A DNA stretch of 64,000 nt. It comes from Lama guanicoe. Lineage: Eukaryota. The stretch spans positions 981,185 to 1,045,184 of the forward strand of contig MU056703.1 in NCBI GenBank assembly GCA_013239625.1, read 5' to 3'. The first letter of the stretch is position 1; each line of letters starts with the position of its first letter. The notes beneath the pieces were generated by a model, which was given only the letters and a program-made list of their open reading frames with translations, was not told the origin of the DNA and searched no databases. The position numbers and the translations under genes were made by a program. Shown here piece by piece: positions 43,659 to 62,925 of this stretch.

Positions 43659-62925
<19,267 letters not shown>

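Follow-up and report, generated by a model that had tools for sequence, protein, structure and literature searches.

Exon 16b of PFKP in the guanaco, Lama guanicoe, is the local ortholog of an ancient alternative exon, and its residue 30 is aspartate instead of the serine present in all annotated orthologs. We found this exon in a stretch of 64,000 nucleotides of guanaco DNA (referred to below as the window), and the replacement has no counterpart among the vertebrate PFKP sequences retrieved. The committed step of glycolysis, which is under the heaviest regulation, is catalyzed by PFK1, and the strongest activator of this enzyme is fructose-2,6-bisphosphate (F2,6BP). The exchanged serine lies in the site at which this activator acts. 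On balance, we regard drift as a more likely account of the aspartate than a selected allosteric switch.

Read on the minus strand, the exons follow one another in the order 15, 16a, 16b, and 17, with 16b located between 16a and exon 17 on the same strand (Table 1). Both 16a and 16b comprise 51 codons, with cag directly before and gt directly after the exon. As exon 15 ends and exon 17 starts in phase 0, the inclusion of 16a, 16b, both, or neither leaves the reading frame intact. An exon alignment revealed that 16a shares 50 of 51 residues with human platelet-type PFK. The gene is therefore the PFKP of a non-human mammal, and the exons downstream of 16b likewise read as PFKP. The locus (44000-64000, minus strand) is very GC-rich, and stop-free open reading frames (ORFs) of 100-400 codons cross introns, so that ORF length is no guide to exons there.

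Table 1. Features of the PFKP exon 15 to exon 17 region, listed in the direction of transcription (positions refer to the window)
Feature	Position	Strand	Remarks
PFKP exon 15	54974..55061	(-)	ends ...GGFE in phase 0, then gt
PFKP exon 16a, constitutive-type (TVSNN)	54276..54428	(-)	153 nt, phase 0-0, donor GAC/gtgagt (slash marks the exon border)
16a codon 30, TCC = Ser	54339..54341	(-)	equals PFKL Ser529, PFKM Ser530, PFKP Ser540
I1 upstream arm, candidate	53165..53186	(-)	intron between 16a and 16b
16b acceptor region	50702..50735	(-)	pyrimidine-rich tract, CTGAC branch-point-like motif, cag
PFKP exon 16b, alternative tandem-duplicated exon	50549..50701	(-)	153 nt, phase 0-0, open reading frame
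16b codon 19, CGC = Arg	50645..50647	(-)	otherwise Cys (distinct exons: 98/98 of 16b, 68/69 of 16a)
T-T-D-N-N loop of 16b	50606..50620	(-)	orthologous 16b exons read T-I-S-N-N
16b Thr29 codon	50615-50617	(-)	reading of the minus strand
16b codon 30, GAT = Asp	50612-50614	(-)	reading of the minus strand
16b donor gtaaca	50543..50548	(-)	C at +5 (50544)
I1 downstream arm, candidate	48113..48134	(-)	61-82 nt before the exon 17 acceptor
PFKP exon 17	47888..48052	(-)	starts in phase 0 after cag

Exon 16b matched human PFKP chains with E=4.5e-14 and the same stretch of PFKP, PFKL, and PFKM with E values of about 1e-13. It also passed the cut-off of the Pfam family PF00365 (40.3 bits vs. 30.9, profile positions 110-147). 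The best match, to the counterpart of PFKP residues 511-560, lies in the regulatory C-terminal half. This location of the best matches, together with the placement of the exon in the 16b clade described below, ruled out an origin from the N-terminal catalytic half. Exons 16a and 16b agree in 25 of 51 residues and 93 of 153 bases, and the identities at codon positions 1, 2, and 3 amount to 34, 37, and 22 of 51, respectively. Saturation of the third position and conservation of the first two are as expected for an old duplication that was kept coding. The similarity of 16b to PFK is far above chance, and the sequence comparisons identify 16b as a real, intact homologue of exon 16.

The effector serine belongs to the sugar-bisphosphate pocket. 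Residue 30 of exon 16 aligns with residue 529 of PFKL and residue 530 of PFKM, and the alignments combined with the Val539 numbering of Lam et al. make it residue 540 of PFKP. The initial annotation had read TVSNN in 16a and TTDNN in 16b. Our reading of the minus strand confirmed both motifs, and the coordinates and codons given for Ser30 (TCC) and Asp30 (GAT) proved exact. The equivalence of the codon-30 serine to PFKL Ser529, claimed as the site of O-GlcNAc and F2,6BP, is supported by the alignments and by the observation that O-GlcNAc on PFK1 Ser529 blocks F2,6BP binding (Fernandes et al., 2020, PMC7702303). Both cases concern the same residue position, but O-GlcNAcylation of Ser529 is a reversible modification of serine, whereas the guanaco aspartate is fixed and cannot be glycosylated. 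Residue 539, which adjoins Ser540, is called FBP-contacting by Lam et al. (2021, PMC7954323), and the allosteric sugar site of PFKL is occupied by fructose-1,6-bisphosphate (F1,6BP) (Lynch et al., 2024).

A weaker second alignment sets the T-T-D-N-N of 16b over the S-I-D-N-D of the catalytic half, with Asp30 over the first D. This bears out the further claim that the effector serine occupies the position of the catalytic S/TIDND aspartate of the N-terminal half. Asp30 therefore brings back the ancestral active-site residue from which this position of the effector pocket derives. Work from 1996 attributed to Heinisch, Boles, and Timpel reportedly yielded a yeast PFK that is insensitive to F2,6BP. 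Ser-to-Asp exchanges at the homologous serines of both yeast subunits are said to have eliminated activation by F2,6BP, with catalytic activity and AMP activation kept, and the physiological effect in yeast was reportedly mild. The chemical logic would be the same in guanaco 16b, namely restoration of the catalytic-site aspartate and hence a negative charge beside the extra phosphate. The yeast mutant, however, is said to be an engineered, hetero-octameric fungal enzyme, whereas the guanaco aspartate is natural. Our literature search yielded nothing relevant on Ser724, S724D, or S530D mutants, on effector-site residues of PFKM, or on PFKP in camelids.

To collect orthologs, we searched 1.84 billion representatives by HMMER with 16b as the query and ran two word-indexed searches with the 16b regions of a sturgeon protein and of a horse protein as queries. 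Among the HMMER matches were numerous genomic ORFs of a single exon along with some spliced models, and a clear subgroup was closer to 16b than to 16a. Several database "proteins" that match 16b (e.g., P0003 and P0012) are read-through ORFs from genomic contigs. The word-indexed searches returned named PFKP proteins that carry a 16b-type exon after 16a or in its place. Such exons are present in the PFKP of lamprey, sturgeons, paddlefish, many teleosts, and coelacanth; of frogs, turtles, alligator, geckos, and snakes; and, among mammals, of gerbil, voles, sea lions, seals, mink, cats, horse, and ground squirrel. Occurring from lamprey to mammals, the duplication is thus vertebrate-wide. A protein-homologue search with the 64-residue ORF over guanaco 16b gave no candidate.

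Serine occupies residue 30 in every distinct annotated exon, that is, in 98 of 98 16b and 69 of 69 16a exons, and aspartate occurred at this position in no other vertebrate PFKP exon 16 among the sequences retrieved. The initial annotation had named a lack of conservation of the aspartate among orthologs as evidence against its reading, and the orthologs do contain serine instead. Residue 29 is isoleucine or valine in all 98 distinct 16b exons and threonine in the guanaco. Thr29 and Asp30 thus break the 16b effector loop P-A-T-I-S-N-N, which is otherwise invariant. Comparison of these sequences indicates that Asp30 is private to the guanaco lineage. Because it is absent from the orthologs, the aspartate is not a design principle of the exon pair, in which the conserved signature differences are only milder ones, V/I29 and S/T36.

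Some variation was nevertheless observed in and around the loop. A few mammal-like 16b genomic ORFs (the P0009 cluster, P0158, P0163, P0164, and P0144) contain asparagine at residue 30, reading T-I-N-N-S or T-I-N-N-N, and other mammal-like 16b exons have serine or aspartate at position 32. Thus, the 16b effector loop varies in several mammals. If the ancestral serine codon was AGY, the path from Ser via Asn to Asp would consist of two single transitions. P0079 and its cluster represent a eukaryote-like PFK fragment (preceded by ...GGFE) with P-A-T-I-D-N-N-I-P-G in the regulatory half, and judged by its sequence, P0079 is a possible natural precedent for aspartate at the effector serine. Bacterial double-length 6-phosphofructokinases of about 730-770 amino acids (P0035, P0357-P0359, P0084, and P0093, from Arcanobacterium, other Actinomycetaceae, and uncultured bacteria) carry S-I-D-N-N or T-I-N-N-N in the loop of the C-terminal half.

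A maximum-likelihood tree of 51 exon-16 columns separated 16a from 16b with a support of 95/90. Guanaco 16b, which carries the 16b signature motifs GTDLS and NVIVE, was placed inside the mammalian 16b clade (support 99/99) as sister (90/82) to the genomic ORFs P0015 and P0154, both of which have lost Arg12 and Cys23. Mammalian 16b evolves several-fold faster than 16a, with terminal branches of 0.1-0.4 vs. 0-0.06 changes per site. The mammalian 16b exons share 26-48 of 51 residues in pairwise comparisons, and the non-mammalian ones are much more alike. Guanaco 16b departs from six residues with a conservation of 90% or more (E3Q, L8M, C19R, I29T, S30D, and V33I) and keeps about 24 other strongly conserved positions. 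Cys19, Ile/Val29, and Ser30 vary hardly or not at all across the 16b exons, and all three are changed in the guanaco. Nearly all other 16b-type genomic ORFs read through the donor as V-R or V-G, which implies a G at +5 in those donors; the guanaco donor has C. The exon contains no stop codon and no indel, and both AG/GT splice dinucleotides are present. At the sequence level, the changes of invariant residues, the fast evolution, and the donor without +5 G suggest relaxed constraint and probably weak inclusion. Since no stop, indel, or loss of a splice dinucleotide was found, guanaco 16b is not demonstrably dead. It is no obvious pseudo-exon and could be selected for an altered function.

The tree also bears on the age of the exon pair. 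PFKL-type exons (P0002 and P0007) group with 16b and share T-I-S-N-N-V-P-G-T, and a PFKM-type exon (P0008) groups with 16a and shares T-V-S-N-N-V-P-G-S, the tree support for both groupings being weak at 51 columns. This pattern hints that the duplication is older than the divergence of the three PFK paralogs of vertebrates, in which case PFKP alone may have kept both copies. With a PFKL-like 16b and a PFKM-like 16a, the pair may switch the effector pocket of PFKP between an L-like and an M-like form.

The exon 16 pair itself is a known alternative exon of PFKP. The human Ensembl transcripts PFKP-203 and PFKP-205 are described as a mutually exclusive exon event by Lam et al. (PLoS Comput Biol 2021, PMC7954323; preprint 2018), where the Val539-to-Ile exchange beside the F2,6BP/FBP site is reported and the switch is suggested to alter allostery, alongside PKM1/PKM2. 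Martinez-Gomez et al. (2022, PMC9741552) count PFKP as one of the human cases of tandem-duplicated exon substitution and state that one effector-binding residue differs. A serine change at the effector site is mentioned in the accessible text of neither Lam et al. (2021) nor Martinez-Gomez et al. (2022). Other literature on PFKP and mutually exclusive exons was irrelevant (intron retention in Alzheimer brain; pfkpa expression in salmon), and our literature search found no kinetic study of a 16a or 16b form of PFKP. The allosteric-switch idea for the exon pair has therefore been published, on the basis of V539I, and the Ser-to-Asp change is new. Of the splicing-controlled switch parallel to PKM1/PKM2 that the initial annotation had envisaged, the general idea has precedence elsewhere, and the Ser/Asp difference on which it was built is not conserved.

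The guanaco exon resembles the human pair (Hatje dataset; PMC7954323; PMC9741552) in gene, exon position, length, phase, effector loop, and proposed allostery. The difference published for the human pair is Val539 to Ile, whereas the loop of guanaco 16b reads TTDNN. The PKM1/PKM2 system (PKM exons 9/10) is likewise based on homologous tandem exons of equal length that recode part of an allosteric sugar-bisphosphate pocket. The choice between the PKM exons is, however, experimentally established, tissue-regulated, and conserved, whereas guanaco PFKP 16b is known from sequence and its critical residue change is not conserved.

Our proposed scenario, which we consider more likely than not, starts with an ancestral exon 16 that would have been duplicated in tandem early in vertebrates. 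Both copies are predicted to encode a strand-loop-helix element of the regulatory C-terminal half whose PAT-x-S-N-N loop belongs to the effector pocket for sugar bisphosphates. Splicing can join exons 15 and 17 through either 16a or 16b, which are interchangeable there because of their equal length and phase. In the guanaco lineage, 16b has gained Ser30-to-Asp, Ile29-to-Thr, and Cys19-to-Arg, along with a donor without the usual +5 G. If 16b is used, a carboxylate would be placed where the serine hydroxyl meets the effector phosphate, activation by F2,6BP and F1,6BP would be weakened or abolished, and the O-GlcNAc acceptor would be removed. Provided that the isoform is made and folded, we infer that 16b subunits would probably bind F2,6BP and F1,6BP poorly and lack O-GlcNAc at this site. 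We put the chance that the 16b isoform is made at a meaningful level at about even. In organism A, the sister species, 6 of the 11 sampled 16b words (55%) were detected in fourteen small runs from five studies, for which the RNA label is a guess.

Asp30 could blunt the control by F2,6BP, yet drift in an exon that evolves fast and is little used would explain it at least as well. Such drift under weak use is more likely than a selected switch because 16b evolves fast in all mammals, other invariant residues are broken as well, and the donor is weaker. Taken by itself, drift of an exon with weak or no use is a serious candidate, although we would not give it an even chance. That guanaco 16b drifts neutrally, is hardly spliced in, and bears an aspartate without physiological consequence seems possible but rather doubtful. 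Three invariant positions broken in a single exon of 51 codons (C19R, I29T, and S30D) and the donor gtaaca are what such decay would leave behind, and the loss of Arg12 and Cys23 in the nearest relatives, P0015 and P0154, suggests relaxed constraint in the whole group. The open frame, the retained splice dinucleotides, and the preservation of about two dozen strongly conserved positions, however, fit poorly with neutral decay. By a rough estimate rather than a computation, a neutral stretch of 153 nt usually gains indels over tens of millions of years.

The introns around 16b contain two pairs of long-range complementary segments that are candidates for RNA bridges. The arms of the first pair, I1, are complementary in 21 of 22 bases, with a predicted duplex energy of -64.5 kcal/mol vs. 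(-34 ± 4.9) kcal/mol for shuffled arms (42-nt windows). As they bridge the intron between 16a and 16b and the acceptor region of exon 17, their pairing would loop out 16b. In the second pair, I2, positions 54250-54272, within the first 26 nt past the 16a donor, pair with positions 50967-50989, about 270 nt before 16b, at a predicted energy of -46.5 kcal/mol vs. (-31.4 ± 4.0) kcal/mol for shuffled arms. Among 100 dinucleotide shuffles, one had a best score as high as that of I1, and none had a second-best score as high as that of I2. According to these predictions, I1 and I2 are candidate bridges that could steer the choice between 16a and 16b.

Such bridges are among the features that would fit a selected allosteric switch, in which regulated inclusion of 16b renders PFKP deaf to PFKFB/F2,6BP signalling and to O-GlcNAc, in parallel to PKM1/PKM2; both pairs score above chance, flank 16b, and could regulate the exon choice. 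Moreover, the exon is undamaged, as its frame is open and its AG/GT borders are retained, and the aspartate sits exactly at the otherwise invariant effector serine. A radical change in a preserved exon can mark a functional shift, and the yeast PFK that is reportedly insensitive to F2,6BP offers a precedent. Nevertheless, the aspartate was found in no other species, it is accompanied by changes of other invariant residues and by the loss of the donor +5 G, and mammalian 16b is fast-evolving as a whole. We therefore consider a selected switch possible but unlikely.

Alternatively, 16b might be included after 16a as an extra cassette, which would produce a tandem repeat of 51 residues in the protein. 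Because both exons are in phase 0 and 153 nt long, the reading frame enforces no exclusivity, and dozens of database models of 835-845 amino acids from fish, frogs, turtles, carnivores, and rodents do hold 16a followed by 16b (e.g., P0184, P0191, P0286, P0306, P0309, and P0350). These tandem models may, however, be systematic gene-prediction artefacts. Many fish isoforms of about 787 amino acids are annotated with 16b only, the human PFKP-203/-205 pair is described as mutually exclusive, and the regulatory domain would probably not fold with a tandem insertion, which makes this arrangement very improbable. The least credible explanation of the GAT codon is a mistake in the assembly or a rare allele carried by a single animal. 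A single genome was read, and the best-matching DNA runs may include those of the sample used for the assembly. All 11 sampled 16b words (31-mers) were, however, recovered in four sequencing runs of organism B (two samples from one study), which argues against an assembly slip even though one sample may be the assembly's own source, and two base differences separate GAT from any serine codon.

We conclude that drift remains the preferred reading of Asp30, and that the contribution of this exon is narrow: it represents one lineage in which an otherwise invariant serine is replaced, and it points to an easy experiment rather than to a demonstrated new switch. A natural isoform in which the effector serine gives way to an acidic residue would make it simple to probe the weight of this site in a mammalian enzyme. 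It is improbable, in our view, that the guanaco 16b isoform is expressed, blind to F2,6BP and F1,6BP, and resistant to O-GlcNAc, so that glycolysis in some tissues is uncoupled from PFKFB. If this were true, the isoform would be a natural counterpart of the reportedly engineered yeast Ser-to-Asp enzyme and might have to do with the unusual way in which camelids handle glucose.
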